A program made the position numbers and the translations under genes. The notes under the pieces were generated by a model. It saw only the letters and a list, made by a program, of their open reading frames with translations, did not search any database and was not told the origin of the DNA. Shown here in pieces: positions 1 through 16,442 of a stretch of 64,000 bases of DNA. The number at the start of each line of letters is the position of its first letter. Position 1 is the first letter of the stretch. The stretch lies in IMG/VR virus record IMGVR_UViG_3300017917_002434, positions 205,731 through 269,730 of that record; one strand, 5' to 3'.

Positions 1-1167
1 ATAGTTAAAACCTACGAGGCTGTCACCGAATATTGTGGGTTCTCGGCTATCGAAGCAGGGAAAACCATGGGATTATTTCCCTATGGTAAACCTAACGATA
101 AAATTCCTAAGTTGTTCGATTTTACTTCGAAGGTTCCGTTGTCTAATAGGAATCTAATCGTGCCTGCCTATCCATCTTCTTCTATAGTTAACAGTGCTTT
201 GTTTGACTATCTAGATGAAGTACCTGTAGAAGGTGAAGATGTTACTAAATTACAGAGTCGTAGAGACCTAGCCTACGCTTGCCAGACTCAAACACAAGAA
301 CAGGTAGTTCGTTTAATTCGTAAAGCAGTTGAAATAAGCGGAAAGAAGAATGTAGTAATCAGCGGAGGCTACGGATTAAATTGTGTAGCAAATTATCATT
401 ATCTAGAACAGCTAAAAGATGAAGGCATCAAGATTTATGTTGAGCCTATCAGTAATGATGCTGGTACTGCTATGGGTGCTGGAATGATGTTCTGGAGAGC
501 TTTGTCGGATAGCAGAGAAAAACAAAAATTGGATACTCTGTATCTAGGTCCTGAGTATACATATTCTGATAGAGAAATCCAAGAAAAAGTTAATTATGCT
601 GGCGGAGAAGTTGTAGATGCTACTAATAAAGATGTTGTAAAACTACTCCGTGAAAAGAACATTGTGACGATCTTTCAAGGCCGTTCAGAAAATGGTCCAC
701 GTGCTCTAGGAAACCGTTCTGTGCTGTTTGACCCAACATTCGAAGACGGTAAAGATTTTGTCAATACTGTAAAACGTAGAGAGTATTTCCGCCCATTTGC
801 CGGTAGTATTATACACGATCACGTACATGATTGGTTCGATCTCAGAGGCATGGACGAAACCCCCCATATGATGTACGCTGTAAATTGTAAGCCCGGGGTA
901 GCAGAAAAAATTCCTAGTATTATACATGTCGACGGCACATGTAGAATACAGAGTGTAAAACGTGATCAAAATCCTCACTACTACGATCTTATCAAAGAAT
1001 TCTACGATCAAACAGGAATTCCTATCATTTTTAACACCAGCTTTAATCTAGGCGGCGATCCACTAGTTGAAACGCTAGACGATGCTATCGAGACATTGGT
1101 TAAGAGTGATATCGAGTATCTGTTTTTACCTGAATACGGTAAGCTGATCAAGATCGCTAATAGCTAA
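1..1167 (+). CDS. Carbamoyltransferase, NodU/CmcH/TobZ family (5' end outside window)
   Basis: Frame is open from base 1. Motifs GKTMGLFPYG, SGGYGLNCVAN, DAGTAMGA, GPRALGNRS, KRREYFRPFA, HVDGTCRIQ and NTSFN are present. Confidence 0.93.
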   Translation: MVKTYEAVTEYCGFSAIEAGKTMGLFPYGKPNDKIPKLFDFTSKVPLSNRNLIVPAYPSSSIVNSALFDYLDEVPVEGEDVTKLQSRRDLAYACQTQTQEQVVRLIRKAVEISGKKNVVISGGYGLNCVANYHYLEQLKDEGIKIYVEPISNDAGTAMGAGMMFWRALSDSREKQKLDTLYLGPEYTYSDREIQEKVNYAGGEVVDATNKDVVKLLREKNIVTIFQGRSENGPRALGNRSVLFDPTFEDGKDFVNTVKRREYFRPFAGSIIHDHVHDWFDLRGMDETPHMMYAVNCKPGVAEKIPSIIHVDGTCRIQSVKRDQNPHYYDLIKEFYDQTGIPIIFNTSFNLGGDPLVETLDDAIETLVKSDIEYLFLPEYGKLIKIANS

Positions 1168-3420: not shown

Positions 3421-6400
3421 ATGGCAAAGAGAAAAATAGACAATTATACATTTAGACCGGGTATCAGTTACCTGGGAAATCTGTATCCAGATGAATGGCA
3501 GAGCTTTTCTGATAACGTGCCGTTTATCAAAGCAGAACTAACAGCCTATTTAAACTATAGGATAGACATCGACACTGAGGTAAATCTGTATCCAAATGCT
3601 GTCCGTATTTTAGAAAACAATATTAATTTTATCAAAGAAGAAGCGACTGCTTGGATAGCTACACAGGTAGCAGGTAACTTTCCTGGATTTGTAGGTTATA
3701 CTTACGATTCAGCCAAATGTAAAAGAGACATTGGATTTGTTTTAACCGCTTATATCCATGATGTTAGATACGGAGGTAATGAAGACACTAGAACCATAGT
3801 CGGAAAATACTGGATCAACAATGAGCCACAGGTCGATGGGGATCGTCAGGCTGAGGTTAAAACTCACGAGTTTATCAGAGATCTTATAACAGATTACATT
3901 TTGCCTCTAGCTTCGTACACACCATTACAGCTTATCGCAACTAGATACACAACAGGACCAGCAGCCGAGGCCAACGCAGCAGCCCGTATAGATACCCTTT
4001 CAGCAATCACGACCACAGTAATCGCTAATGGCTTATCGTCGATGCCAGCGATATCTTATAAATCTGCTCCATACGAAAATTATACATTTAATTCTGAAAA
4101 ATGTCAGAGAGATCTTGGCTACGTACTAGATGCTTACTTACATGACTTGCGTTATGGCGGAAACGAACAGACTCGACTCACGATACAAAAATACTACGAC
4201 AACGGAGTACTACAAGTCGACGGCAGCGGCCAAGCTGAAGTTGAAGGTCATGAATTTGTAAGAGATCTTATTATTAATAATATCATGCAGAATGAAGCCG
4301 GTACGATATTGTATCCTGAAGCTGTGAGATTATTAACGCTGAACAAGGCCTATTTACAAAATGAAATCTTAGGATGGATCGCTAATGAAGTCACTGAAGC
4401 TACTAAATGCGAAAGAGATATTGGATATCTTATCGATGGAGCACAATATGACATAGTACTAGGCACAAATTACAATGCTTTATTTTTAGGCTTAGCAGAA
4501 TTCAACTCTTTAGATAATGATTTTTTCGTTATCGACACTATACAAAGAACTAAAACAGCCATAGCAGCTCTACCTAATGTTGCTGCGAGTACCGCAGCAG
4601 TGGCTAGAAATAATGCTTTCTTCAATGAAGTAGTTGACATAATCCAGAATGGTAGAGGAAGTGCTAATGAATTAGTGTTAGCCGAACCAAGTAATGCTAC
4701 AGTCAGTAGGATCGCAGCTAAAAATCAACTTGTAGCCAATAAAAATTTCTTAGCCGCAGAAGTTAATGCGTGGGTAGCAGAGCAATATCCTACAGCTGAT
4801 CATGATCCTGTAAAATGTTCTAGAGACGTTAAGTATGCTATCGATGCCTTATGCTACGATATCTTATATGGCGGAAACTCGGCTACTTACGATCAGGCTA
4901 GATTTTTCTTTTACGGTTTCTCTAGCGGAGCTCCAGGCATTGATCCTACTCATAGATTACAAACTGTAGCTGCCTATGTACATCTAAAACAAGTTATCGG
5001 TCAAGTGGTACAGAATCAAACGGTTACTAAGACCACAGGCAATACCTTAACACAGAATCAAACATTTCCAGCAGCCAGTTCGTCGGATGCTATTATCTGT
5101 CAAAATCTAGTACAGATCACAGCAGATGTTGTAGCAGCGACAACACAAACACAGGCAAATACGATTTTATCCGGTATTGTAAGATCAGTTCCTAGCATCA
5201 CATTCGCGACTTCTGCTTTACAGACAGCTTTTAATGCGATAACAACAGCTAAAACATCTGTGATAAATTCTGTTGTTGTTTTCAAAGGATATACCTATGA
5301 TTCTGCCAAGTGTATCAGAGATTCTGGCTTTGTCATAGATGCCCTAATCTATGACTTAGAAAATAACGGTAACGAAGAATCAAGACGAATAGCCCAGAAA
5401 TACTATATAGATGGAGTTTTTCAAGTTGACGGATCCCGTATTCCTGAAATAGCCAGCTATAGATTTTTACAAGAAACGATCAAGAATTATATTTTTCCAA
5501 GAGTAAATGCTCCTGATTATCAGATTGTATATCCTCAGATATTAACAGCACCATCTGCTGAAGTAGGTGCCTACGCAAGAATTACTGAACTAACAGATGT
5601 GTTTATTAATTTTCTAAAAGATGGTCCTAGTAGTTTACCAGCACTGTCTCAGAGAACTGTTCCTTATCAAACAGTAGAACAGCAGGTAGTTGACACTACC
5701 AAAGCCTACGATCCTGATGCTGGCACAGCTATTTTAGCACTTTCAAATGCTCTAGTTAACATCATAGAACAAGGTCTCGGAGCATTGCCTGTTAAAGAAA
5801 GTGCTGGATATGGTTTGATCAAATTTCAGGGTGTTGTAAGATTAGAAGACCTTTTACTAATCACAAATACTACAAAAAATGTAGTTATCTATAATTTCTC
5901 TAGCAATACTGCTGGCGGCGAAATTGTGCCAGAGTTTGACGGCGATGACGATTTCATAGCGTTCAAACAGGTTACAGATCGAGTTATTCATCTACGATTA
6001 AATGTTGATACATCGACTATGGATGAAACTGACGAGCTACAGATATTTGCTGAAGCCCCGGAAATGAAAGTTCGTCCGTACGATTTTGGTACAGATGCTA
6101 TCGAACGTCATAGAGTTGCTTCGCCTCAGTCAATGCTTGACGCTGACTTCGAATATGGTCTACAACCAACTAAGTGGCAGGCTATTGGTATCGCCAGAGG
6201 TTATCCATCAGTGTATGAAGTACCAGGATCAGATTTTGAAGTTGTGTCTATAACAACCGATGCGTCATTTCCTAACAACGGTGTAGGTGCTTCGACTATA
6301 ACTGTAACCACAGCAGCACCGCACGGATTATCAGCTGGTACACCGGTTACAGTGGCTGGTCTTGACACAGCGATCTCTGGTATCAGTAGAGCAGAGGGAG

Positions 6401-9400
6401 CGTTTGTCTTAGTAACTATCCCGACTCCTACTACATTTACATATTTTGCCAAGTCTAGAGTAGGTACTACCTCAGGAACCAGTTTAAAAACTACCTATAC
6501 TCAGATTAGAAAAGGCGGATTTTACACAGGGGCATCCATAGGTTTACCGACTATCAACTTGTTATCTAACGGGACATCGGGAACTTTTGTAACACAATTT
6601 GATACTCCGGCTGCGACATCTCGAATAGCTATCGCCAGCGGTAATATTCCAAGCGTAGGATCACCTATGAATGCCGCAGTAGGTATCGGGTTTGGTTCTC
6701 AGGTCACTGCCGTAGTCGGTGCTGGGGGTGTCGTAGTGACTCCCACTGTGTTAGGGGACTATGCTCCAACACTATTAGGTCTTACTACTCTTACCGTAGC
6801 TAGTACCAGCGGTATAGTGATTGGTTTAGGTGCCAATGATCAGACTGGATCGTCGACGTTCGTTGAATCTATAGTAGGAACTAATGTAACATTTACTAGA
6901 CCTTTTTCCGGTGCTGTGATAGGAAATACCACTACCTATACAGAATTAACCGGAACCAACGAAATATCTATCGGTTCAGCAGCAACATTCAATGTCGTTG
7001 GTAGCTCGGCAGGTTACATTTCTGTAGCCGTTAATTCAGGAGGCAGCGATTATCAAGTAGGAGATGTATTAAGAATAGTAGGAACTGATCTTACAGGAAC
7101 AACGCCAGCTAACGATCTATTGATCAAAGTAGCTACAGTATCCGGTGGTGCTATTTTAACTGCCGACGTTATTTCTGGAACTAGTGTAATGTCGTCACCT
7201 AACGAAACTATTAGCGGCATTAATAATAGTTCTTATACTGCTACTAGTCCAGACAGTACCATAGGTTCTGGAGCTACTTTTGACGTAACTAGAAACGGCA
7301 CAGCTTTTACATCAGTAATCAATGCCGGTGGTACTGGATACGTCAAGGGAACAGAGTTTCTAATCTTAGGAACTGTATTTACAAATAACACTACTCCGGC
7401 TAACGATGTAGAAATCACAGTTACCCAGACCACAGCAACATTTACTGGTCTATTACAAGATGCGACTACACTATCTGGTAGCTCGGCACAATTTAGTATA
7501 ACTAGGATCGGTGCTACCTATACCAGTTTGGTAGTTTCATTCGCTGGTAGCGGTTATGCCCTAGGAGAGATCGTTACGATCTACGGAACCCAACTAGGGG
7601 GCAACAATCCTTCAAACGATCTTCAGATCCAGGTTGACAACGTAGGCGGGGGCGGTGAAATTATCGCAGCGTCGCTGGTCAGCGGACTTGTAGCTAATGA
7701 AGATGCTCCTGGTGTAATTTCTCAGATATCTACCGCAGGTACAGGTGATAATAGAACAACTATTAATAATGTCCCAGTTCTAATAGTTCCAGGATCAGGA
7801 ATTAACTGTGAATTTTCTATAACTAGAACCGCCAGCGGTTATACAAACGTAGTAGTAACAGATGGAGGCACTGCCTACCTACCAGGAAATAGAATTAGGA
7901 TCCTAGGCAGCGACCTTGGGGGAGCAAACACAACTAATGATGCTATTGTTTCAGTGACTTCTGTTGACTCTATCACCGGAGCAATTACCGCAGCTACAGT
8001 AACTGGAACTGGTGTAGCAGGTATCAATTTACAGTTATATTCATCTGTGACTCTCAGCGAATTTACTACAGCTACTATAGCTTCGAGTACCAGCCTAGGC
8101 TTTGGTACCCTAGCGACTTTACAGATAATTTTTCAAGAGCCGCATGGTATACCACCCGGGGGATCATTTATCGTTACTGTGAGTTCAGACAACGGATCTA
8201 ACAATCATGCGTTAGCCAATGGATCTTTCTCTGCTACTCAGATACCTACAAGAAACACTATTACTTTCCAGGCTAGATCTCCGGGCGTTATCACAGGAGC
8301 ACCTATTACCGGAGTCGTATACCCAAGACCGGACAGTTTCTTCACACATAGACCGTTTGACGGCGGTGTACAACTAGGTACTGGCGGTCCACAACACGGT
8401 GTACAGGCTATACGACAGAGTAAAAAATATATTCGTTATCAATCTGGTAAAGGTGTAATGTATACAACGGGTGCTCTGTTTGCTCCAAGTTATGATGTAT
8501 TGTCTATATTGGCAACAGATGTCGAAGTTGGAGCTACCATAGAAATCACCTTAGGTGATAATGATCACGGGTTACAGCGTGGTGCTGTGATTAGACTCAG
8601 CGGAGTCTTAACTGGAGGTTACGATGGCGATTATGAAGTAGATGAAATCGTCAGCGAACGTACATTTAGAATAATCGCTACGAAGCGTGTAGGTTCTAGA
8701 AAACCGTCATTGAGCTTCAGCTGTCAAATTTCTACACTACGTTGGAAGGGTGCGGTAGTACGTGCCGGAGTGTTTGATGATCAAAATGGAATATTCTGGG
8801 AATATGACGGACAGACATTATGGGCCGTTCAGCGTACTTCTACTAAACAATTAGCAGGTACGATCTCAGTTAACGCTGGCTCAAACAGGATCACAGGACT
8901 GAACAGTAGATTTAGAGATCAATTAAAAGCCGGTGACGCTGTTACTATCAGAGGTATGACACACATCGTAACTCACGTCGACAGCCAAACTTCGATGACT
9001 GTTAACCCAGATTATCGCGGCGTCAGCAATGTGTCAAACGCTAAGATGAGTTTAATTTCAGAAGTACGTGTACAACAACGAGATTTCAACAAAGATAGAT
9101 TAGACGGAACAGGTCCTAGCGGATACGATCTAGATATTACCAAGATGCAGATGATCGGAATCCAATATTCATGGTACGGTGCTGGTTTTATTGACTTCAT
9201 GTTGCGAGGATCTGATGGAAATTATGTGTTCGCCCATAGAATGAGAAATTCGAATATCAATACCGAAGCTTATATGAGAACAGGTAACTTGCCTGTGAGA
9301 TATGAAGTTTCAAACTACGGTGCGACCAGCAGATTAGTTGGAGACATTGGAAACACATCTACAGAGTTAACTCTCGAAAGCATAGCAGGATTCCCTACTA

Positions 9401-11502
9401 CGGGAATCGTTTATATCGATAACGAAATGATTTCGTACACTGGAGTTAATACCAGCCAGAACAAACTCACAGGGTGTACTAGATCAGCACAGTTAGATCT
9501 ATTCATTGCTGGTGCTAATAGAAATTTTACCGCAGGGGTAGCTGCTAATCACAGCAACGGTACAGGTGTAATTTTAATGAATAACACTACAACACCTTTG
9601 ATTAGCCACTGGGGTAGTGCGTTCTTGACCGACGGATTGTTTGATTTTGACCGTGGATACATTTTCAACTATGCTTCTACCGGTCTAAGTGTAAGCACTG
9701 TTAAATCAACGGCTTTCCTAATTCGTCTAGCACCTAGTGTGTCAAACGCAGTTGTTGGAGATCTAGGCGATAGAGAGCTCCTAAATAGAGCACAATTACT
9801 ATTGAAAGAAATCGCAGTAACGTCAGACACAGGCTCGGGCGGTATTATTGTTGAGGGAGTATTAAATCCTCAGAATTATCCTTCTAATCCTAGCGACATT
9901 GTTTGGTCAGGTTTGTCCGGTGTTGCGGCCGGTGGTCAGCCTAGCTTCGCTCAGATAGCACCAGGAGGATCTGTAAACTGGTCAGGCGGCGTAGCCCAAC
10001 CAACAGCTACAGCCACAGCATTAAACACAGTTACCGCCAATATCACTGTACCAAATAAAACAGCATTCAATAGACCTGCTGGTACATCATTCGTCTATGT
10101 TACACAGACTAGCTGGAATACATCAGGATCCCAGAGTGGTTTCGCTATAGCAGCTTCAGATACTAAATTCCAGTCTGGTACAACAATTTCATCCGTAGCT
10201 TCGAGTCCTAGTCCAGTAGCCACGACATTAGGAATATTAACTTCTAGTATGTCTACATTCTTTAGAAGTATATCGGGTAATAGTATCAGCGGTAACGGTA
10301 TTACTGCCACATTGAACTTTAACAACCAAGGATACGTACCGTTTCCAGTAAATTCGAGAATAACTGTTAGTGGTTTCAGTGCTTATAATGGAACTTATAT
10401 CGTAACTGGAGCAGGAAATAACTTTGTACAGTTTGCCTCTACGTCGACTAACTTCCAAACAAACGGAACAGTCCAGACTGCTTACGTCGCTGGGCAGACA
10501 ACATTGAACATAACAGAAGCTAGTTGGAATAACATGACTAGCCCTGTAACACAGACAGGATTTGGCGTAACATCTTCATTTCCGGCAGGAACAACTGTCA
10601 CTGGAGTTACATCGATACAAGGAACATCGCCGAACAGATACTATACCGTGACATTCAGTCAGGGTCTTACTTCTGATTTACCGTTATCATCTACGACTAT
10701 CAATACCAGTTTTGGTGGAGCAAGAACAAGCACAAATAACCTATTCTTTACCGCAGCTAGTTGGACAGCATTACCAGTAGATGTTCCGGTTAACGGCACA
10801 CTGACTAATGATCCTACCAAATTTACTGGCGGAACTATTATCAACTCTATCAGCGGCCTACAGACATTTGGCGGTACTGGATACTATTCTGTATCATTTA
10901 GTAACAACTGTATAGGAACATTAGCAGGCGGAACAACTGTCACATTTGATACTATACCTTATTTTACTCTGTTCTTGAGTAGAACTTCGGCACAGGCTGT
11001 TAATGCTAATGCCACTATAACTATGTCATTGGCACAAAACTCTGCTGTCACCAACTTTGTGTATTTTACACAGGCCAGTTGGGAAACTCTAGTTTCGACC
11101 TATTCAGCAGGTGCCGGTACAGAAGTAGCAGATACAAAATTTGCTGCGGGTACTCGTGTTGCTACTGTGAGTACTCTAAGAACGTTTGGTGGTTCTGGAT
11201 ATTATGTAGTAACATTTACCCAGACGTCTAATGCTGTTGTGGCTGGCGGAAACACTATTACATTTAGATTTGGACAACCTCCATATGCGTTACCGGGCGA
11301 ACAGGTATTCTCATTCATCAGTTTACCAGGAAGTTCGGACAGTCTTAACCTAGAGGACCTCAAAGAATTAACCAATACTACCTTGGGTGGTAGAGGTACA
11401 TTCCCTAACGGTCCTGACGTTTTGGCTATCAACATCTTCAAAGTATCTGGAGCAGCAGTTAACGCTAACGTAATTCTACGTTGGTCCGAAGCACAAGCCT
11501 AA
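3421..11502 (+). CDS. Giant (2693 aa) modular virion structural / tail-fibre protein
   Basis: Single long ORF, Thr/Gly/Ser-rich, with three internal repeat families (KCxRDxG.., GxxYxxG..xNDxxIxV, xTxASW..KFxxGT). Confidence 0.75.
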   Translation: MAKRKIDNYTFRPGISYLGNLYPDEWQSFSDNVPFIKAELTAYLNYRIDIDTEVNLYPNAVRILENNINFIKEEATAWIATQVAGNFPGFVGYTYDSAKCKRDIGFVLTAYIHDVRYGGNEDTRTIVGKYWINNEPQVDGDRQAEVKTHEFIRDLITDYILPLASYTPLQLIATRYTTGPAAEANAAARIDTLSAITTTVIANGLSSMPAISYKSAPYENYTFNSEKCQRDLGYVLDAYLHDLRYGGNEQTRLTIQKYYDNGVLQVDGSGQAEVEGHEFVRDLIINNIMQNEAGTILYPEAVRLLTLNKAYLQNEILGWIANEVTEATKCERDIGYLIDGAQYDIVLGTNYNALFLGLAEFNSLDNDFFVIDTIQRTKTAIAALPNVAASTAAVARNNAFFNEVVDIIQNGRGSANELVLAEPSNATVSRIAAKNQLVANKNFLAAEVNAWVAEQYPTADHDPVKCSRDVKYAIDALCYDILYGGNSATYDQARFFFYGFSSGAPGIDPTHRLQTVAAYVHLKQVIGQVVQNQTVTKTTGNTLTQNQTFPAASSSDAIICQNLVQITADVVAATTQTQANTILSGIVRSVPSITFATSALQTAFNAITTAKTSVINSVVVFKGYTYDSAKCIRDSGFVIDALIYDLENNGNEESRRIAQKYYIDGVFQVDGSRIPEIASYRFLQETIKNYIFPRVNAPDYQIVYPQILTAPSAEVGAYARITELTDVFINFLKDGPSSLPALSQRTVPYQTVEQQVVDTTKAYDPDAGTAILALSNALVNIIEQGLGALPVKESAGYGLIKFQGVVRLEDLLLITNTTKNVVIYNFSSNTAGGEIVPEFDGDDDFIAFKQVTDRVIHLRLNVDTSTMDETDELQIFAEAPEMKVRPYDFGTDAIERHRVASPQSMLDADFEYGLQPTKWQAIGIARGYPSVYEVPGSDFEVVSITTDASFPNNGVGASTITVTTAAPHGLSAGTPVTVAGLDTAISGISRAEGAFVLVTIPTPTTFTYFAKSRVGTTSGTSLKTTYTQIRKGGFYTGASIGLPTINLLSNGTSGTFVTQFDTPAATSRIAIASGNIPSVGSPMNAAVGIGFGSQVTAVVGAGGVVVTPTVLGDYAPTLLGLTTLTVASTSGIVIGLGANDQTGSSTFVESIVGTNVTFTRPFSGAVIGNTTTYTELTGTNEISIGSAATFNVVGSSAGYISVAVNSGGSDYQVGDVLRIVGTDLTGTTPANDLLIKVATVSGGAILTADVISGTSVMSSPNETISGINNSSYTATSPDSTIGSGATFDVTRNGTAFTSVINAGGTGYVKGTEFLILGTVFTNNTTPANDVEITVTQTTATFTGLLQDATTLSGSSAQFSITRIGATYTSLVVSFAGSGYALGEIVTIYGTQLGGNNPSNDLQIQVDNVGGGGEIIAASLVSGLVANEDAPGVISQISTAGTGDNRTTINNVPVLIVPGSGINCEFSITRTASGYTNVVVTDGGTAYLPGNRIRILGSDLGGANTTNDAIVSVTSVDSITGAITAATVTGTGVAGINLQLYSSVTLSEFTTATIASSTSLGFGTLATLQIIFQEPHGIPPGGSFIVTVSSDNGSNNHALANGSFSATQIPTRNTITFQARSPGVITGAPITGVVYPRPDSFFTHRPFDGGVQLGTGGPQHGVQAIRQSKKYIRYQSGKGVMYTTGALFAPSYDVLSILATDVEVGATIEITLGDNDHGLQRGAVIRLSGVLTGGYDGDYEVDEIVSERTFRIIATKRVGSRKPSLSFSCQISTLRWKGAVVRAGVFDDQNGIFWEYDGQTLWAVQRTSTKQLAGTISVNAGSNRITGLNSRFRDQLKAGDAVTIRGMTHIVTHVDSQTSMTVNPDYRGVSNVSNAKMSLISEVRVQQRDFNKDRLDGTGPSGYDLDITKMQMIGIQYSWYGAGFIDFMLRGSDGNYVFAHRMRNSNINTEAYMRTGNLPVRYEVSNYGATSRLVGDIGNTSTELTLESIAGFPTTGIVYIDNEMISYTGVNTSQNKLTGCTRSAQLDLFIAGANRNFTAGVAANHSNGTGVILMNNTTTPLISHWGSAFLTDGLFDFDRGYIFNYASTGLSVSTVKSTAFLIRLAPSVSNAVVGDLGDRELLNRAQLLLKEIAVTSDTGSGGIIVEGVLNPQNYPSNPSDIVWSGLSGVAAGGQPSFAQIAPGGSVNWSGGVAQPTATATALNTVTANITVPNKTAFNRPAGTSFVYVTQTSWNTSGSQSGFAIAASDTKFQSGTTISSVASSPSPVATTLGILTSSMSTFFRSISGNSISGNGITATLNFNNQGYVPFPVNSRITVSGFSAYNGTYIVTGAGNNFVQFASTSTNFQTNGTVQTAYVAGQTTLNITEASWNNMTSPVTQTGFGVTSSFPAGTTVTGVTSIQGTSPNRYYTVTFSQGLTSDLPLSSTTINTSFGGARTSTNNLFFTAASWTALPVDVPVNGTLTNDPTKFTGGTIINSISGLQTFGGTGYYSVSFSNNCIGTLAGGTTVTFDTIPYFTLFLSRTSAQAVNANATITMSLAQNSAVTNFVYFTQASWETLVSTYSAGAGTEVADTKFAAGTRVATVSTLRTFGGSGYYVVTFTQTSNAVVAGGNTITFRFGQPPYALPGEQVFSFISLPGSSDSLNLEDLKELTNTTLGGRGTFPNGPDVLAINIFKVSGAAVNANVILRWSEAQA

Positions 11503-11506
11503 AAGG

Positions 11507-11534
11507 TTGACAATCAGACTTTTTGCTGTATAAT
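11507..11534 (+). promoter_or_regulatory. sigma70-type promoter (leaderless) for the heptose operon
   Basis: TTGACA-16 bp-TATAAT, with the ATG 6 nt downstream at 11541. Confidence 0.75.
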
Positions 11535-11540
11535 TACAGC

Positions 11541-11936
11541 ATGAGTCTGATTTTTGTTAACGGTTCTTTTGATATACTTCATCCAGGACACATCGAACTG
11601 CTAAACTATGCCAAAAGTTTAGGATCTCATCTCATGGTTGCCATAGATTCGGACGCTAGAATTACTAGTTTAAAAGGACCGACTCGGCCTATTAACAATC
11701 AACGTTATAGAGCGTTCATGTTAAAAAATCTTAGAGCAGTGGACGAAGTAGTAATTTTTGATTCTGACCAAGAATTAATAAACTTGATCGCTGCCTGTGA
11801 TATAATGGTAAAAGGCAGCGACTATATGGGTAAACCTATCGTAGGCGAAGAAGTCTGCGATGAAATTATATTTTTTGATAGATTATATGACTATTCAACA
11901 ACAAAAATCATTCAAGATATTGTTAATCGGAGATGA
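11541..11936 (+). CDS. rfaE2: HldE C-terminal-like adenylyl/cytidylyltransferase (RfaE domain II)
   Basis: NGSFDILHPGH (HxGH) motif, SLKGPTRPIN and VKGSDY. Start moved to ATG 11541. Confidence 0.9.
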   Translation: MSLIFVNGSFDILHPGHIELLNYAKSLGSHLMVAIDSDARITSLKGPTRPINNQRYRAFMLKNLRAVDEVVIFDSDQELINLIAACDIMVKGSDYMGKPIVGEEVCDEIIFFDRLYDYSTTKIIQDIVNRR

Positions 11937-12636
11937 TTGTTCTGATGTGTATCAATATGGCACAGTTGAAAGGTTAAGTCCCGAAGCACCCGTGCCGGTA
12001 TTTGTTCCTACCCACAAAGAAACACGGCCTGGAATGGCCGGTAATGTATCTAAGAATCTCGAAGCACTAGGGTGTGAAGTAAATTATATTCATGCTAAAA
12101 CATCCACTAAAACGAGACTGATAGATAAACGCAGTAATCAACATATTGCTAGGATAGATAATGACGAAATGTCTGAACCTATATCGTTCGAAACTGAAAT
12201 ACCTAAAATTTACGATGCTATTGTCGTCAGCGACTACAACAAAGGCACAGTCACATATGAACTCATCGAAGAGTTAATTGATACTAAAATTCCTGTGTTT
12301 ATCGACACTAAAAAAATTGATCTAGAAAGATTCCAGGGCAGCTGGGTGAAAATTAACGCTGCTGAGTATAGACTAATTAAAAGTGAATGTACAGGATTGA
12401 TCGTAACACTAGGTGAGGACGGTGCTCGAGTTATTCATCATGATATTCACTACCCAGCACCTAAAGTAGAAATCAGCGATGTCTGTGGTGCCGGAGATAC
12501 ATTTTTGGCTGCTCTAGCTTATAGATATTGCGAAACAAAAGACATCGACGAAGCTGTTAAGTTTGCTATCAAAGCAGCCAGTATCACAGTCCAGCATCTA
12601 GGTAATTACGCACCAACATTAGAGGAAATAAAATGA
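11887..12636 (+). CDS. rfaE1: HldE N-terminal-like heptose-7-phosphate kinase (PfkB family, RfaE domain I)
   Basis: RLSPEAPVPV, GMAGNV, VVSDYNKG and DVCGAGDTFLA (PfkB anion-hole) motifs. Start moved to ATG 11887. Confidence 0.9.
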   Translation: MTIQQQKSFKILLIGDDCSDVYQYGTVERLSPEAPVPVFVPTHKETRPGMAGNVSKNLEALGCEVNYIHAKTSTKTRLIDKRSNQHIARIDNDEMSEPISFETEIPKIYDAIVVSDYNKGTVTYELIEELIDTKIPVFIDTKKIDLERFQGSWVKINAAEYRLIKSECTGLIVTLGEDGARVIHHDIHYPAPKVEISDVCGAGDTFLAALAYRYCETKDIDEAVKFAIKAASITVQHLGNYAPTLEEIK

Positions 12637-13013
12637 CAGAAAGACTTACAGGAAAAGTAGATAAAGGATGGGGCTTTGAAATTATATGGGCTACCAACGA
12701 TCACTATTGCGGAAAAATTTTAGTATTCGAAAAGGCAGGAAATAAGTTTTCTATGCACTTCCATAAAACCAAAGATGAAACTTGGTTTGTTAATTCTGGC
12801 AAATTTAAATTACGTTGGATAGATACTAAAGATGCTAAAATCTATGAACAAGAATTAAATGAAGGCGATACTTGGCATAATCCTCCTTTACAACCTCATC
12901 AATTAGAAGCCATGACAGATGGTGCTATGGTGTTTGAAGTCAGCACAGCAGATTCTATAGAGGATAATTATCGATTAGTACCCGGAGACAGTCAAAAGAA
13001 AGCAGAACAATGA
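12633..13013 (+). CDS. Cupin-fold sugar isomerase-like protein
   Basis: KGWGFEI, SMHFH..KDETW..PH..E cupin metal-binding motifs. ATGA-coupled to the kinase gene. Confidence 0.75.
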   Translation: MTERLTGKVDKGWGFEIIWATNDHYCGKILVFEKAGNKFSMHFHKTKDETWFVNSGKFKLRWIDTKDAKIYEQELNEGDTWHNPPLQPHQLEAMTDGAMVFEVSTADSIEDNYRLVPGDSQKKAEQ

Positions 13014-13498
13014 ACATATATCTAGACATGGACGATGTTGTAGCTGATTGGTTTGGCTACGCTAGAGAGTATCTCAATGAGCCACTGTTCAAAGATGGTG
13101 ACATATTGCCCGAAGCTACTTGGCAAAAATTAAAAAATGATCAGCGTATGTATAGTAAACTTCCTGTTAAAAAGGGAGCATATGATTTAGTCAACTGGTG
13201 TAGAAATTATAGAGATACAAAAAACGCAGGACTTTATTTTCTCAGTGCTATCCCCAAAGGCAATGATATGCCCTGGGCACCTCAAGATAAAGTTTTTTGG
13301 GCACATGAATATTTTCCTGACATCCCTGTATTTTTAGGTCCATATAGTTTTGATAAGTGGGTTAGATGTTCTCCTGGAGATATCCTAATAGATGATCGTA
13401 GATCAAATTGTGAAGATTGGGAACGTGCCGGGGGCCTATCACACATATACCGCTCTTGGCCGGAATGTAAACTTTGGTTAGAGGACATTCTAAAATGA
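13010..13498 (+). CDS. HAD-superfamily phosphatase (5'(3')-deoxyribonucleotidase-like)
   Basis: IYLDMDDVVAD (DxD motif I) and DILIDDR (motif IV). Confidence 0.8.
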   Translation: MNIYLDMDDVVADWFGYAREYLNEPLFKDGDILPEATWQKLKNDQRMYSKLPVKKGAYDLVNWCRNYRDTKNAGLYFLSAIPKGNDMPWAPQDKVFWAHEYFPDIPVFLGPYSFDKWVRCSPGDILIDDRRSNCEDWERAGGLSHIYRSWPECKLWLEDILK

Positions 13499-14385
13499 TC
13501 ATAGTAACTGGTGGTGCCGGCTTCATTGGTTCTAATATTATAAAAGGTCTAAATGATAGATCTATTTCAAATATTATTGTTGTTGATGATATTAATCCCG
13601 ATAAAGAAAAAAATCTAGAAGATTTAAAATTTTCAGATATACTTTCCCCTCAAGATTTCTACGGCATCTGGAATCACTGGCACATCGTTGATGCGGTATT
13701 TCACGAAGGTGCTATATCATCTACCACAGAAAAAGATCAAAATAAGATAGATCAGTATAATCTTCAACCCGGTTATTGGCTAGTAGAGCAGGCTGCTAGA
13801 AACAATTTTTTATTATCTTATGCTAGCTCTGCTTCAGTCTACGGTGACAGCAATACCTTTAAAGAAAAACAGCCACTAAATCCTCAATCGCTTTATGCTA
13901 CTAGTAAAATGCTGTTAGATCAATATGTCTATAGCACATTATTAGATTATCCTGATACTAGAATACAGGGTTGGAGATATTTCAACGTCTATGGAAAAAA
14001 TGAAATTCACAAAAAAGATCAAGCGAGCCCGATAACGAAATTTAGTCAGCAGGCCAAAAATACAGGAAAAATAAAAGTTTTTAAAGGCAGCGAAAATTTT
14101 CAGCGAGATTTTATCTGTGTCAGCGACATAGCCGATATTAAAATAAAATCATTAGACAAGAACTTTAATGGAATTTTTAATCTCGGTACAGGAAAAGCAA
14201 TATCGTTTTTAGAAGTGGCTGAACTGATCAAAGAAAGATATTCGGCGACTATTGAAGAAGTAGAGTTTCCTCAAGAGCTTATCAATCAATACCAAAAATA
14301 TACCTGTTCGGATAATACAGAATTATTGAAGGTGATAGGAAATTATGATTTTACGTCTATTAGATCTTTTCTTTCAACGACATAA
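13495..14385 (+). CDS. hldD: ADP-L-glycero-D-manno-heptose-6-epimerase (extended SDR)
   Basis: IIVTGGAGFIGSN, HEGAISSTTE, YASSASVYG, YxxxK (YATSK), RYFNVYG and RDFI motifs, in a heptose gene context. Start moved to ATG 13495. Confidence 0.85.
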   Translation: MIIVTGGAGFIGSNIIKGLNDRSISNIIVVDDINPDKEKNLEDLKFSDILSPQDFYGIWNHWHIVDAVFHEGAISSTTEKDQNKIDQYNLQPGYWLVEQAARNNFLLSYASSASVYGDSNTFKEKQPLNPQSLYATSKMLLDQYVYSTLLDYPDTRIQGWRYFNVYGKNEIHKKDQASPITKFSQQAKNTGKIKVFKGSENFQRDFICVSDIADIKIKSLDKNFNGIFNLGTGKAISFLEVAELIKERYSATIEEVEFPQELINQYQKYTCSDNTELLKVIGNYDFTSIRSFLSTT

Positions 14386-14617
14386 TTTTCTTTTCTATCT
14401 CTAATCTAATATTTTTTAGTCTAGTTCTTTCTTCAGTCTGTCTCGTAAGATTAGAGATCATGTCGATCGATTCTACAGCAGCATCTAGATTTTTCGCCTG
14501 AGACTTAAATCTCTTATAGAGTTTTTCTAACTCTGTATCTTTAGTTTCTTCGATGAGTTTTTCGTAACGTCGGCAGTCTTCGATAAAATTTTTACTTTTA
14601 GTAATAGATAGTTTCAT
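14360..14617 (-). CDS. Hypothetical coiled-coil protein
   Basis: 85-aa ORF coupled to the upstream gene; K/E-rich and helical. Confidence 0.6.
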   Translation of the reverse strand: MKLSITKSKNFIEDCRRYEKLIEETKDTELEKLYKRFKSQAKNLDAAVESIDMISNLTRQTEERTRLKNIRLEIEKKIMSLKEKI

Positions 14618-15000
14618 AATGAACTTCCCATTAATAATATTGTGTCGATTTTAGTTTTGATTATTTTATTAGTTAATGTAGTTTTTAAACCCGTGTGTAC
14701 ACCTTTAGGCAAAACGTCGATCATTGACCAACAAAAAGTTTGATTATTTGACGGGACAAATTCTTGATCTACTAAGCAGATGTAAGTAGAAAATTCAAAT
14801 CCGCTGTCTTGACTAAGATATAATTCTACCGGAACTAACCTAGCATCTTTACCATAGTATTCGTAGATGATAGCTTGAGCGTCTTCTACTACAGATTTAT
14901 CTCTAACAAAGCTAGGAACTGTCCATTTGAGATCTTCTAGTATCATTAAGATTCTAGAAGTTTTTTTTGATATAAACAGGATTCCGGCATGTTTCTGCAT
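14614..15000 (-). CDS. Nudix-fold protein with degenerate Nudix box
   Basis: AGILFISKKTSRILMIL N-terminal strand pattern; the Nudix box is replaced by WTVPSFVRDKSVVEDAQAIIYEYYG. Start chosen 5 nt after a TATATA late-like box. Confidence 0.5.
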   Translation of the reverse strand: MQKHAGILFISKKTSRILMILEDLKWTVPSFVRDKSVVEDAQAIIYEYYGKDARLVPVELYLSQDSGFEFSTYICLVDQEFVPSNNQTFCWSMIDVLPKGVHTGLKTTLTNKIIKTKIDTILLMGSSL

Positions 15001-15011
15001 GCCTTTATATA

Positions 15012-16442
15012 TCATCCTTCTAAATCAAAGCTCCAATATCCGGCTGTGTATTCGCCTTCGAAAGATTTAAGCCATTGGCCGTCTTCCCATTTATATTGGA
15101 TGCCAGTTTTGAGATTTTTGATATAGTATGGTTGAGAAATTTCAACTGACGGATCAAAGATCACAGTCCAGTCGGTACCGTTCCATTCTACGATAGAATT
15201 AGCGACTGCTACAAAATCTGAATCATCGGAATTTTTCCAAGCATCTGCTCCGTCCGAATTAGCCACCGAACCAATATCTTCTAATATAAGATATTTCATA
15301 CCTACTAATAATCCTGTTGTGGGATCAAATGTTTGAGGATTGATAATAGCATTGATGACTAAATCAGTCTGCGGCTCAGAATCAGAATCAAAGTCTACTA
15401 CTAAAAATTGACTGTCTACTTCGTTGATACTAAATGTGCCTACGAGTTCGTAACCACTAGGTTGTAAAAATCTAATACGACTAATTCCGGGTCTGTATTT
15501 TCCATACTGAGGAATAATTTTATTCCAATCAATCGCCCCAGCGGTTTTCTTAGGTATATCTAGTCCGCTTTCTACTATAGCCTCGTTGACATCTAAGGCA
15601 CTGACATAGTAAGAACCAGTCTCAACACCTGTAACTGTCTTAGAAGACAACAGTAATACTCCGAAATTTCCCGGTGTAGTAATAATAGATGTTGATTTTA
15701 TGTCTTTATTATCAACTGGACTATTAAACGCTAATTCTGCTAGAGGTTTTAACTGCCCATCATCATCAAACATATTCATGATAATGTTCTGTACCACACC
15801 AAGTTTCTTAACCTTAACTGGAGGACTGATATAAATCGGCATCTCAAAATCAAGAGAACAGATGTCTATATCAACTTCTGTGCCTTGAGGTATAGATCGA
15901 GATGTAAAATTTGAAGCGGTTAGTTCGACTACACTTAGGCTGGTCCAATCGATATAATTATCTGTAGTTTGTACCTCTAGACTGGGGTTGAATAATACTA
16001 GTATTTGCTCTAGTAATTGTAATTTTTGATCTGTGTTAGAACTCCAGATGTCTGCCCGCATACTTAATTTAAAAGGTGTAGGCATTAGTCGTTCAACAGT
16101 ATAGCCGCCCCCCTGGGTGTTGTTGTATATTGGCTCGCCGGTCTCGTCATCAAAGGATTCATACGATCTTCCTCGAATACTGACCTTACTAACATAACTA
16201 GCATCGGCTAGTCTATTTCTATCTAATTCTATTCCTGTGATATAACACGCGATCTTTGGAACACTAGGCAGTTTATTTTCTGAATTTTCTCTGATGATCT
16301 GTGCTACTTGCTTGGTAAGATCGCCATAGGCAACAGGGACTTGTTTCAGAGATCCGTCGCCGGCTTGGTACTTAAAACCAATGAAGATTCTCATAAACTG
16401 AGTTACATATCTTCGTATCTGTCCATCATAGAAAAAATCCAT
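15012..16442 (-). CDS. gp15: Tail sheath stabiliser / tail terminator, T4 gp15-like, with C-terminal extension
   Basis: N-terminus FFYDGQIRRY..F..F..QVPVAYGD resembles gp15; adjacent to gp14 and gp13. Confidence 0.8.
   Translation of the reverse strand: MDFFYDGQIRRYVTQFMRIFIGFKYQAGDGSLKQVPVAYGDLTKQVAQIIRENSENKLPSVPKIACYITGIELDRNRLADASYVSKVSIRGRSYESFDDETGEPIYNNTQGGGYTVERLMPTPFKLSMRADIWSSNTDQKLQLLEQILVLFNPSLEVQTTDNYIDWTSLSVVELTASNFTSRSIPQGTEVDIDICSLDFEMPIYISPPVKVKKLGVVQNIIMNMFDDDGQLKPLAELAFNSPVDNKDIKSTSIITTPGNFGVLLLSSKTVTGVETGSYYVSALDVNEAIVESGLDIPKKTAGAIDWNKIIPQYGKYRPGISRIRFLQPSGYELVGTFSINEVDSQFLVVDFDSDSEPQTDLVINAIINPQTFDPTTGLLVGMKYLILEDIGSVANSDGADAWKNSDDSDFVAVANSIVEWNGTDWTVIFDPSVEISQPYYIKNLKTGIQYKWEDGQWLKSFEGEYTAGYWSFDLEG

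Follow-up and report, generated by a model that had tools for sequence, protein, structure and literature searches.

A five-gene operon of a large marine phage that probably makes ADP-heptose, with a cupin as the proposed isomerase

[quoted passage not shown] The question addressed here is whether a phage operon that carries HldE- and HldD-type genes but no recognisable GmhA or GmhB could complete this pathway with non-orthologous enzymes, as was proposed in a preliminary description made from the sequence alone. The window (the whole stretch of DNA that was analysed, 64,000 nucleotides) covers positions 205,731 to 269,730 of the IMG/VR virus record IMGVR_UViG_3300017917_002434. Coordinates below are those of the window unless otherwise stated.

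Organisation of the operon and assignment of its genes

The operon reported in the preliminary description was confirmed, and consists of five overlapping genes on the + strand (11541-14385). Family assignments were based on profile searches (Pfam, NCBIfam and PHROG), and the nucleotidyltransferase (NT), the kinase and HldD all scored below the NCBIfam equivalog cut-offs. The first gene (11541-11936) encodes an HldE-type NT (TIGR02199, rfaE_dom_II, 7.6e-35, 119.8 bits against a cut-off of 181.5; CTP_transf_like; phrog_7878), with an HPGH motif and a YSTT motif. Tyr replaces the Arg of the STTR5 motif (as defined in PMC11573728), so no prediction of CDP/UDP-heptose synthesis is made. The second gene (11887-12636, with a possible alternative start at 11860) overlaps the first by 50-77 nt and encodes an HldE N-domain type heptose 7-phosphate 1-kinase (TIGR02198, rfaE_dom_I, 4.3e-46, 157.5 bits against a cut-off of 345; PfkB; phrog_8133, 9e-93). 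It is a short PfkB form of about 250 aa, about 60 aa shorter than the model, and its GAGD motif is invariant in relatives.

The third gene (12633-13013) encodes a 126-aa single-domain metal cupin (Cupin_2, 1.4e-8), and the fourth (13010-13498) a 162-aa HAD phosphatase of the NT5C-like branch (NT5C, PF06941, 1e-4, 22.7 bits, below the cut-off of 24.8, and no NCBIfam hit). The fifth gene (13495-14385 from an ATG, or from a TTG at 13474) encodes an HldD-type ADP-glyceromanno-heptose 6-epimerase, an SDR with GGAGFIGS and Y-x3-K motifs (heptose_epim TIGR02197, 5.5e-80, 268.9 bits against a cut-off of 274.6, over 288 of 316 model positions; Epimerase, 5.9e-32). The last three junctions are ATGA-type overlaps of 4 nt.

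A sigma-70 consensus promoter (TTGACA-N16-TATAAT, 12/12 matches, + strand) lies at 11507-11534, in the 38-nt gap that follows the stop of the upstream gene. The ATG of the first gene lies 6 nt after the -10 hexamer, so the mRNA is probably leaderless. The window holds five such perfect sites, against 0.09 expected. Both hexamers are unchanged in four related contigs while the spacer varies, and in a fifth the -10 region differs. No intrinsic terminator was found after HldD, and the end of the operon is defined only by the convergent gene.

The gene immediately upstream (3421-11502, + strand) encodes a 2693-aa repetitive virion-type protein without any Pfam family, and homologous giant genes flank the heptose cluster in several related loci. 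The 3' part of a carbamoyltransferase gene occupies positions 1-1167 (+ strand), and is preceded outside the window (G000:C1:204151-205092, in the numbering of the record) by a GT9-like gene (Glyco_transf_9, 22.4 bits against a cut-off of 22). The same GT9-like and carbamoyltransferase pair directly precedes the heptose genes in cyanophage S-CAM1 (52% identity to the S-CAM1 neighbour). The psbA gene is absent from the record.

Distribution of the cupin and of GmhA

The whole 269,730-bp record, which is only about 76% complete, gave no match to gmhA (TIGR00441), to SIS_2 (PF13580) or to the GmhB-type HAD model TIGR01656. SIS_2 is also lacking in relatives that are 100%, 98% and 94% complete, and no SIS/GmhA was found in the complete cyanophages S-CAM1 and Sf-FS3. 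A phmmer search with E. coli GmhA gave no hit among 6,633 ORFs from about 225 viral loci.

The cupin, in contrast, is almost invariably linked to HldE-type genes in phages. Among 62 cupin-centred loci, all but 6 carry HldE-type kinase/NT genes, and most carry an HldD-like SDR. As a kinase scan with a single protein found only 3 loci, an alignment was used instead; of 83 kinase-centred phage loci, 76 carry the cupin and none carries GmhA. Natural fusions (noted ~) were also found, including small HAD~cupin (three proteins), NT5C-like HAD~cupin, NT~cupin and cupin~NT. A Patescibacteria chromosome has an operon that reads GT1, GT1, kinase~cupin, NT~GmhB-HAD, SDR, GT9.

Distributions were compared in a sample of 301 Patescibacteria genomes, of which 24 have rfaE_dom_I at E<=1e-30. 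Of these 24 genomes, 20 have GmhA, and none of the 20 has a strong cupin; of the 4 without GmhA, 2 have the cupin adjacent or fused to the kinase (Fisher p=0.022). Adding G009, a genome with the short kinase, gives 3 of 5 against 0 of 20 (p=0.004). A Comchoanobacterales genome has HldE, HldD, cupin and GmhB on a 357-kb contig, a GT9 gene, and no GmhA. The cupin family is however not strictly tied to this pathway, since several genomes (G159, G178 and Marinoscillum) have strong cupin homologues without any heptose kinase. A narrower alignment found only 16 cellular loci, several of them probably phage contigs binned into MAGs.

The cupin has a complete His3-Glu metal motif, G-x5-H42-x-H44-x4-E49-x6-G (sequence GNKFSMHFHKTKDETWFVNSG) plus H89, the residues of which are invariant in 48 homologues. 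Other family-invariant residues include K11, E16, K28, K47, E102, S104 and D111. The AF2 model (pLDDT 94.8) is all-beta. Structural comparisons with Foldseek and VIA-align gave a flat list of cupins at Z 12-15, in which the cupin domain of CapF, a nucleotide-sugar C3-epimerase, came first (Z 15.4), and in which PMI, lyxose isomerase and PGI cupins were tied with dioxygenases at Z 12-14. The predicted fold is considered as compatibility evidence only. A sequence search of the PDB returned mainly oxalate decarboxylase and was uninformative. Sequence profiles lean towards the PMI and lyxose isomerase families: the window protein scores 17.7 bits against Lyx_isomer (PF07385, cut-off 20.8), fused homologues pass MannoseP_isomer (PF01050, 1.2e-8 and 3.1e-7, 35.6 and 31 bits against 23.6), and one homologue passes Lyx_isomer (26.2 bits).

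Proposed pathway and alternative readings

Taken together, these data suggest that the five genes form one early-type operon that converts sedoheptulose 7-phosphate (S7P) to ADP-L-glycero-beta-D-manno-heptose without host enzymes, a reading to which a probability of about 0.55 is given in the absence of any measured activity. The cupin would isomerise S7P to D-glycero-D-manno-heptose 7-phosphate (inferred), which is the heptose counterpart of the phosphomannose isomerase reaction that other cupins catalyse through a metal-bound cis-enediol. The short PfkB kinase would phosphorylate C1 (from homology), the NT5C-like HAD would remove the 7-phosphate (inferred from slot equivalence), the cytidylyltransferase-fold enzyme would add AMP (from homology), and HldD would epimerise C6'' (from near-equivalog homology). 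A heptose nucleotide is very likely to be the product of the pathway, and the cupin is probably the isomerase, whereas the role of the HAD as 7-phosphatase is only somewhat more likely than not. The likely consumer is the GT9-like protein encoded about 12 kb upstream, and the acceptor could be the host envelope or a virion protein.

The inference of the preliminary description on the cupin was strongly supported, and that on the HAD moderately. The HAD has D6-x-D8, K116 and D128-D129, invariant in 28 homologues, and its model (pLDDT 92.2) shows an alternating beta/alpha core. Where a HAD is present in the cupin-carrying, kinase-centred loci, the slot next to the cupin is filled by exactly one of three unrelated types, never two (16 GmhB-type, 14 NT5C-like, and 13 of a minimal type of about 100 aa), and the NT5C-like type occurs in at least five gene orders. 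Sister contigs with 93-95% identical cupins carry either the NT5C-like or the small HAD in the same slot. A relative that is 100% complete has the NT5C-like HAD and no GmhB-type HAD, and one that is 98% complete has the reverse.

The alternative that survives best, although it remains unlikely, is that this HAD is an ordinary phage 5'(3')-deoxyribonucleotidase that merely sits in the operon, dephosphorylation being left to host GmhB or to promiscuous phosphatases, which is compatible with the cupin being the isomerase. The caveat of the preliminary description, that NT5C-like HADs are common in T4-like phages on their own, is real: 72 of 79 homologue loci have no heptose gene within 6 kb, including 80% identical copies, five long contigs with the HAD have no kinase, and in two loci the HAD lies in the same structural-module neighbourhood without heptose genes. 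The closest solved structures are deoxyribonucleotidases (3bwv, profile match at 6.3e-5 and best Foldseek hit at TM 0.72, followed by human mdN/cdN at TM about 0.6). Moreover, 33 of the 76 kinase-centred loci that carry the cupin show no HAD at all, so a phage-encoded phosphatase is dispensable. Against this reading stand the mutual exclusivity of the HAD types, within heptose clusters and across complete genomes, the variety of heptose gene orders in which the NT5C-like HAD is embedded, its natural fusion to the cupin, and the ATGA overlaps with the cupin and HldD genes.

It is less likely still that the cupin is a CapF- or RmlC-like epimerase acting with the SDR on ADP-heptose or a keto-intermediate to make a modified heptose, the isomerase step being supplied by host GmhA. 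This reading is favoured by the structural match to the Zn-binding cupin domain of CapF (rmsd 1.8 over 110 residues), by the many loci in which the cupin sits directly after the HldD-like SDR, and by one Patescibacteria genome in which it sits next to an RmlD-like reductase. However, the fusions found in this survey are to the kinase, the NT and HAD phosphatases, which handle the sugar phosphates and their nucleotidylation, and none is to a recognisable SDR. In G009 the cupin occurs with kinase and NT but with no SDR nearby. Cellular genomes that have the cupin in a heptose operon lack GmhA, so they would have no source of heptose 7-phosphate, and sequence identity and profile hits favour the isomerase families.

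Synthesis of a hexose nucleotide, with the cupin as a phosphomannose isomerase (F6P to M6P) and the kinase, HAD and NT processing mannose phosphates, is improbable. It would agree with the PF01050 hits in fused homologues and with JGI and Atlas names of the type "mannose-6-phosphate isomerase-like", but the SDR is a near-equivalog HldD and C6 epimerisation needs the heptose stereocentre, the kinase and NT best match the rfaE domains, and GT9 heptosyltransferases accompany the clusters. A metal-dependent dioxygenase unrelated to sugar activation, suggested by the automatically transferred "cysteine dioxygenase" label of phrog_7851 and by fold matches to quercetinase, cysteine and ergothioneine dioxygenases, is very improbable given the heptose gene context and fusions.

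Comparison with known systems

ADP-heptose is the precursor of the Gram-negative LPS inner core and a potent innate-immune agonist sensed by ALPK1, and GmhA is pursued as an antibacterial target. Literature searches for a cupin-type GmhA found nothing relevant. In the broadest reading, which is considered somewhat more likely than not, a previously unrecognised family of metal cupins of about 125 aa is a widespread, non-homologous replacement for GmhA in most heptose-encoding marine T4-like phages (cyanophages included), in many Patescibacteria and in at least one endosymbiont lineage. Phage heptose cassettes would then be fully self-contained, with three interchangeable HAD phosphatases. If such a second isomerase exists, pathway reconstructions that score phages, Patescibacteria and endosymbionts as heptose-negative for lack of GmhA would change, and a clean example of analogous enzymes would be added, together with a triple non-orthologous displacement of the phosphatase within one pathway. 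Phages could then make a heptose nucleotide in hosts that lack the pathway. Cyanobacterial LPS is reported to lack heptose (PMC4390846), which raises the question of what the phage heptosylates, although 48 of 201 Cyanobacteriota genomes gave a GmhA-like hit.

Heptose gene cassettes of T4-like cyanophages and pelagiphages (S-CAM1, Sf-FS3) have been described as LPS-related auxiliary genes (PMC7029224, PMC7378029). They have the same set of NT, kinase, HAD, cupin and SDR in the hypervariable structural region, with the same GT9-like and carbamoyltransferase neighbours. In those records the cupin is labelled "cysteine dioxygenase" or "cupin" and the minimal HAD "phosphoheptose isomerase", and the role proposed here for the cupin is not stated in the papers found. 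In the broadest reading the annotated "phosphoheptose isomerase" would in fact be the phosphatase and the neighbouring "cysteine dioxygenase" the isomerase, so that a systematic mis-annotation in cyanophage genomes would be corrected.

GmhB, the HAD-IIIA heptose 1,7-bisphosphate 7-phosphatase, shares with the window HAD the proposed reaction, the four HAD catalytic motifs and the slot next to the cupin in related phage and bacterial clusters. The window HAD differs by its NT5C-like branch with a helical cap, the absence of a TIGR01656 match, and the location of most of its homologues outside heptose clusters. The C-terminal cupin domain of CapF (S. aureus UDP-sugar C3-epimerase, 2zkl, 19% identity) is also a metal cupin that works beside an SDR in nucleotide-sugar synthesis, but CapF is fused to its SDR and acts on a UDP-4-keto sugar.

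Cupin-type aldose-ketose isomerases (Thermococcus phosphomannose isomerase 7zvy, D-lyxose/mannose isomerases 7nzo/2y0o/3kmh, archaeal cupin PGI 1j3p and the type II PMI C-terminal domain PF01050) likewise have a single small metal cupin with an HxH...E...H site (Z 12.4-13.9, 22-25% identity to the lyxose isomerases), and conversion of S7P to manno-heptose 7-P is the C7 homologue of the PMI reaction. The phage family differs in having its own invariant N-terminal KGWGxE motif and a DxYR C-terminal motif. With regard to GmhA itself, the cupin can only be a functional analogue and not a family member, the fold being a predicted beta-barrel of about 125 aa with a His3-Glu metal site against the SIS alpha/beta fold of about 190 aa, without sequence similarity. 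The cupin nevertheless occupies the same proposed position, as the first step feeding an HldE-type kinase, has the same genomic partners (kinase, GmhB-type HAD, NT, HldD, GT9), can be fused to the kinase like GmhA in tridomain heptose enzymes (PMC11573728), and is distributed in a complementary way to GmhA in the sampled genomes.

Gene content of the locus and its flanks

The 269,730-bp IMG/VR phage record, of which the window is the last 64 kb, was rated by CheckV as about 76% complete. It is a T4-like myovirus, with a gp15 tail-sheath stabiliser and virion proteins lying next to the locus, and no psbA was found. Five + strand genes lie between 11541 and 14385, and encode a 131-aa cytidylyltransferase-fold protein whose best model is rfaE_dom_II (7.6e-35), a PfkB kinase of about 250 aa whose best model is rfaE_dom_I (4.3e-46), a 126-aa Cupin_2 protein, a 162-aa HAD with a sub-threshold NT5C match, and a 296-aa SDR (268.9 bits on the HldD equivalog model, for a cut-off of 274.6). 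The NT and kinase genes overlap by at least 50 nt, and the other three junctions are ATGA overlaps. A 12/12 sigma-70 consensus promoter lies at 11507-11534, in the 38-nt gap after the stop of the upstream 2693-aa gene, and its -10 hexamer is followed 6 nt later by the ATG of the first gene, so that the transcript is probably leaderless. Five such perfect sites (TTGACA-N16-18-TATAAT; 11507, 18802 and 50931 on the + strand, 61693 and 62620 on the - strand) occur in the window, against 0.09 expected by chance. In four related contigs both hexamers are unchanged while the spacer varies, whereas in a fifth the -10 region differs. The preliminary description, which reported one promoter driving five overlapping genes, is therefore correct in every particular. 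This is a real five-gene operon and very probably a heptose-nucleotide pathway.

Profile searches of the record were performed using gmhA (TIGR00441), SIS_2 (PF13580) and the GmhB-type HAD model TIGR01656, and none of them matched anywhere. As the record is incomplete, relatives were also searched: cyanophages S-CAM1 and Sf-FS3 (whole GenBank records) lack SIS_2, as do IMG/VR relatives that are 100%, 98% and 94% complete (364, 353 and 345 kb).

About 12 kb upstream of the operon, just outside the window (positions 204151-205092 of the record), lies a gene for a 313-aa GT9-like protein (phrog_8954) that barely passes Glyco_transf_9 (22.4 bits for a cut-off of 22). It is followed by a carbamoyltransferase (3' part at window 1-1167), a tail-fibre-like gene, and the 2693-aa repetitive protein that abuts the operon (window 3421-11502). 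The GT9-like protein is 52% identical to the product of the S-CAM1 gene that sits before its carbamoyltransferase and heptose genes, which suggests a heptosyl transfer and carbamoylation module; the acceptor of the heptose could be the host envelope or a virion protein. Another phage locus has a clearer GT9 directly upstream of the kinase. The 2693-aa protein carries repeated segments of the type YTFxSxKCxRDxGYVLDAxxxDLRYGGNE and long Ser/Thr/Gly-rich stretches, and has no Pfam family; giant homologues flank the heptose cluster in several related phage loci (L012, L017, L033). NUDIX hydrolase genes sit directly upstream of the fused HldE gene in several related clusters (L012:2254-2694, L017:3591-4034, L033:2830-3345), and 2OG-Fe(II) oxygenases sit inside them, while the 133-aa ORF at the corresponding side of the window operon (14614-15015, - strand) has no Pfam hit. 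In the last 10 kb of the contig (window 54001-64000), GC content rises to 0.43-0.49, against 0.35-0.41 elsewhere, and GC skew turns negative.

The cupin as candidate isomerase

All but 6 of the 62 viral loci found with the cupin carry an HldE-type kinase and/or NT (split or fused), and most carry an HldD-like SDR. The converse sample is not biased towards the cupin: of 83 loci found with a kinase alignment, 76 contain the cupin, and most of the remaining seven show only the kinase or NT-kinase pair, as short contigs would. The cupin is however not always clustered with the heptose genes, since in the 345-kb, 94%-complete relative (IMGVR_UViG_3300027708_000012) it lies about 200 kb from the NT-kinase-HldD genes, near a weak GT9-like hit and FAD-type oxidoreductase-like ORFs. 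A sub-branch of the family (proteins P0124, P0126, P0131, P0153 and others) has lost the first His and the Glu of the metal motif (for example MILHKQKDKS), and in loci L061-L063 it sits next to ClpP rather than heptose genes, so it probably has a different function.

In S-CAM1 and Sf-FS3 the homologous cupin (38-42% identical) is labelled “cysteine dioxygenase” or “cupin”. The adjacent 107-aa gene labelled “phosphoheptose isomerase” (7077-7400 in the S-CAM1 locus, 8854-9180 in that of Sf-FS3; also found in loci L005, L008-L011 and L016) has all four HAD motifs (DIDGT, T, K, DD), and its profile matches T4 PNK-phosphatase-type HADs, as well as the PDB entry 9iqw “capsule biosynthesis protein” at 1e-16. 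It is therefore a phosphatase, a minimal capless HAD of about 100 aa, and not an isomerase; the label, carried by cyanophage GenBank records and by phrog_1238, looks like a systematic mis-annotation.

Among the 150 best 50%-identity cluster representatives, the cupin domain is fused to the minimal HAD (P0156, P0194, P0198), to an NT5C-like HAD (P0132, seen on three contigs from two samples), and to the NT in both orders (P0209, P0248). On one contig, the P0132 fusion (L146:2217-3116) lies in the replication module of a T4-like phage (clamp loader, RegA, then the fusion) with no other heptose gene on the 6-kb contig. In a Patescibacteria chromosome (genome G254, a 364-kb contig), one operon encodes GT1, GT1, a 439-aa PfkB kinase~cupin fusion, a 392-aa NT~GmhB-type HAD fusion, an SDR and a GT9 heptosyltransferase. 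All identified fusion partners handle sugar phosphates or the nucleotidylation step, and none is a recognisable SDR.

The distribution of the cupin in cells was compared with that of GmhA in 301 evenly sampled Patescibacteria genomes. Of these, 24 have rfaE_dom_I at E<=1e-30, and 20 of the 24 have GmhA; none of the 20 has a strong cupin hit, the best being 72 bits, 37 kb away from the kinase. Of the four without GmhA, two (G092 and G254) have the cupin (144 and 100 bits) adjacent or fused to the kinase (Fisher's exact test, p=0.022). A further genome, G009, has the short phage-like kinase and NT next to a 166-bit cupin and no GmhA, and adding it gives 3 of 5 against 0 of 20 (p=0.004). It must be noted that MAG completeness is unknown, that some genomes have the cupin without any heptose kinase (G159, G178, Marinoscillum), and that two MAGs with both a cupin cluster and GmhA probably carry the cluster on binned phage contigs. 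A Comchoanobacterales genome carries HldE, HldD, cupin and GmhB on a 357-kb contig, has a GT9 gene, and has no GmhA.

The family keeps a complete cupin metal site (H42, H44, E49, H89), together with invariant K11, E16, K28, K47, E102, S104 and D111 and near-invariant R114. This is compatible with the binding of a phosphorylated sugar and with a metal-assisted enediol isomerisation, although both are inferred. The AF2 model is confident (pLDDT 94.8), but the fold search gave a flat list, in which the cupin domain of CapF, a C3-epimerase, is top (Z 15.4), followed by quercetinase, KdgF, Thermococcus phosphomannose isomerase (13.9), lyxose isomerases (13.2 and 13.0, with the highest identities at 23-25%) and cupin PGI (12.4). 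Profile hits lean towards isomerase families, including Lyx_isomer, and PF01050 above its cut-off in the fused homologues. S7P to D-glycero-D-manno-heptose 7-P is the one-carbon homologue of F6P to M6P, and the presence of an HldD-type SDR, which needs the C6 stereocentre, argues that the product is a heptose and not a hexose. The cupin is considered as the best candidate for the missing isomerase (probability of about 0.7), on strong genomic and no biochemical evidence.

The NT5C-like HAD as possible 7-phosphatase

The caveat of the preliminary description, that NT5C-like HADs are common on their own in T4-like phages, holds. Of 79 loci found with the HAD, 72 have no heptose gene within 6 kb, including copies that are 80% identical, five long contigs with the HAD have no kinase, and the nearest solved structures are deoxyribonucleotidases. 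Four observations nevertheless favour recruitment as the 7-phosphatase. First, 43 of the kinase-centred loci carry a HAD (16 GmhB-type, 14 NT5C-like and 13 minimal), and no locus has two types. Second, the NT5C-like HAD occurs in at least five different heptose gene orders, and once as a fusion with the cupin. Third, sister contigs with 93-95% identical cupins carry either the NT5C-like HAD or the minimal HAD in the identical slot between cupin and HldD. Fourth, the 100% complete relative (G519) has the NT5C-like HAD in the operon and no GmhB-type HAD, while the 98% complete one (G525) has a GmhB-type HAD in the operon and no NT5C-like HAD anywhere. Thirty-three of the 76 kinase-centred loci that carry the cupin have no HAD at all, so the step can evidently be outsourced. 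The NT5C-like HAD is a plausible recruited 7-phosphatase, a reading held as somewhat more likely than not.

Comparison with described heptose systems

Full-text searches found no paper linking a cupin to GmhA or to S7P isomerisation, and a cupin-type GmhA analogue is, within the limits of the literature searched, undescribed. The commentary on heptose enzymes across kingdoms (PMC11573728) lists only the known isomerase, kinase, phosphatase and NT types. Published work treats the phage genes as LPS-related auxiliary genes in the hypervariable structural region of cyano- and pelagimyophages (PMC7029224, PMC7378029). Isomerase/kinase/NT tridomain enzymes are a known architecture for GmhA (PMC11573728), and the cupin occupies the same architectural position.
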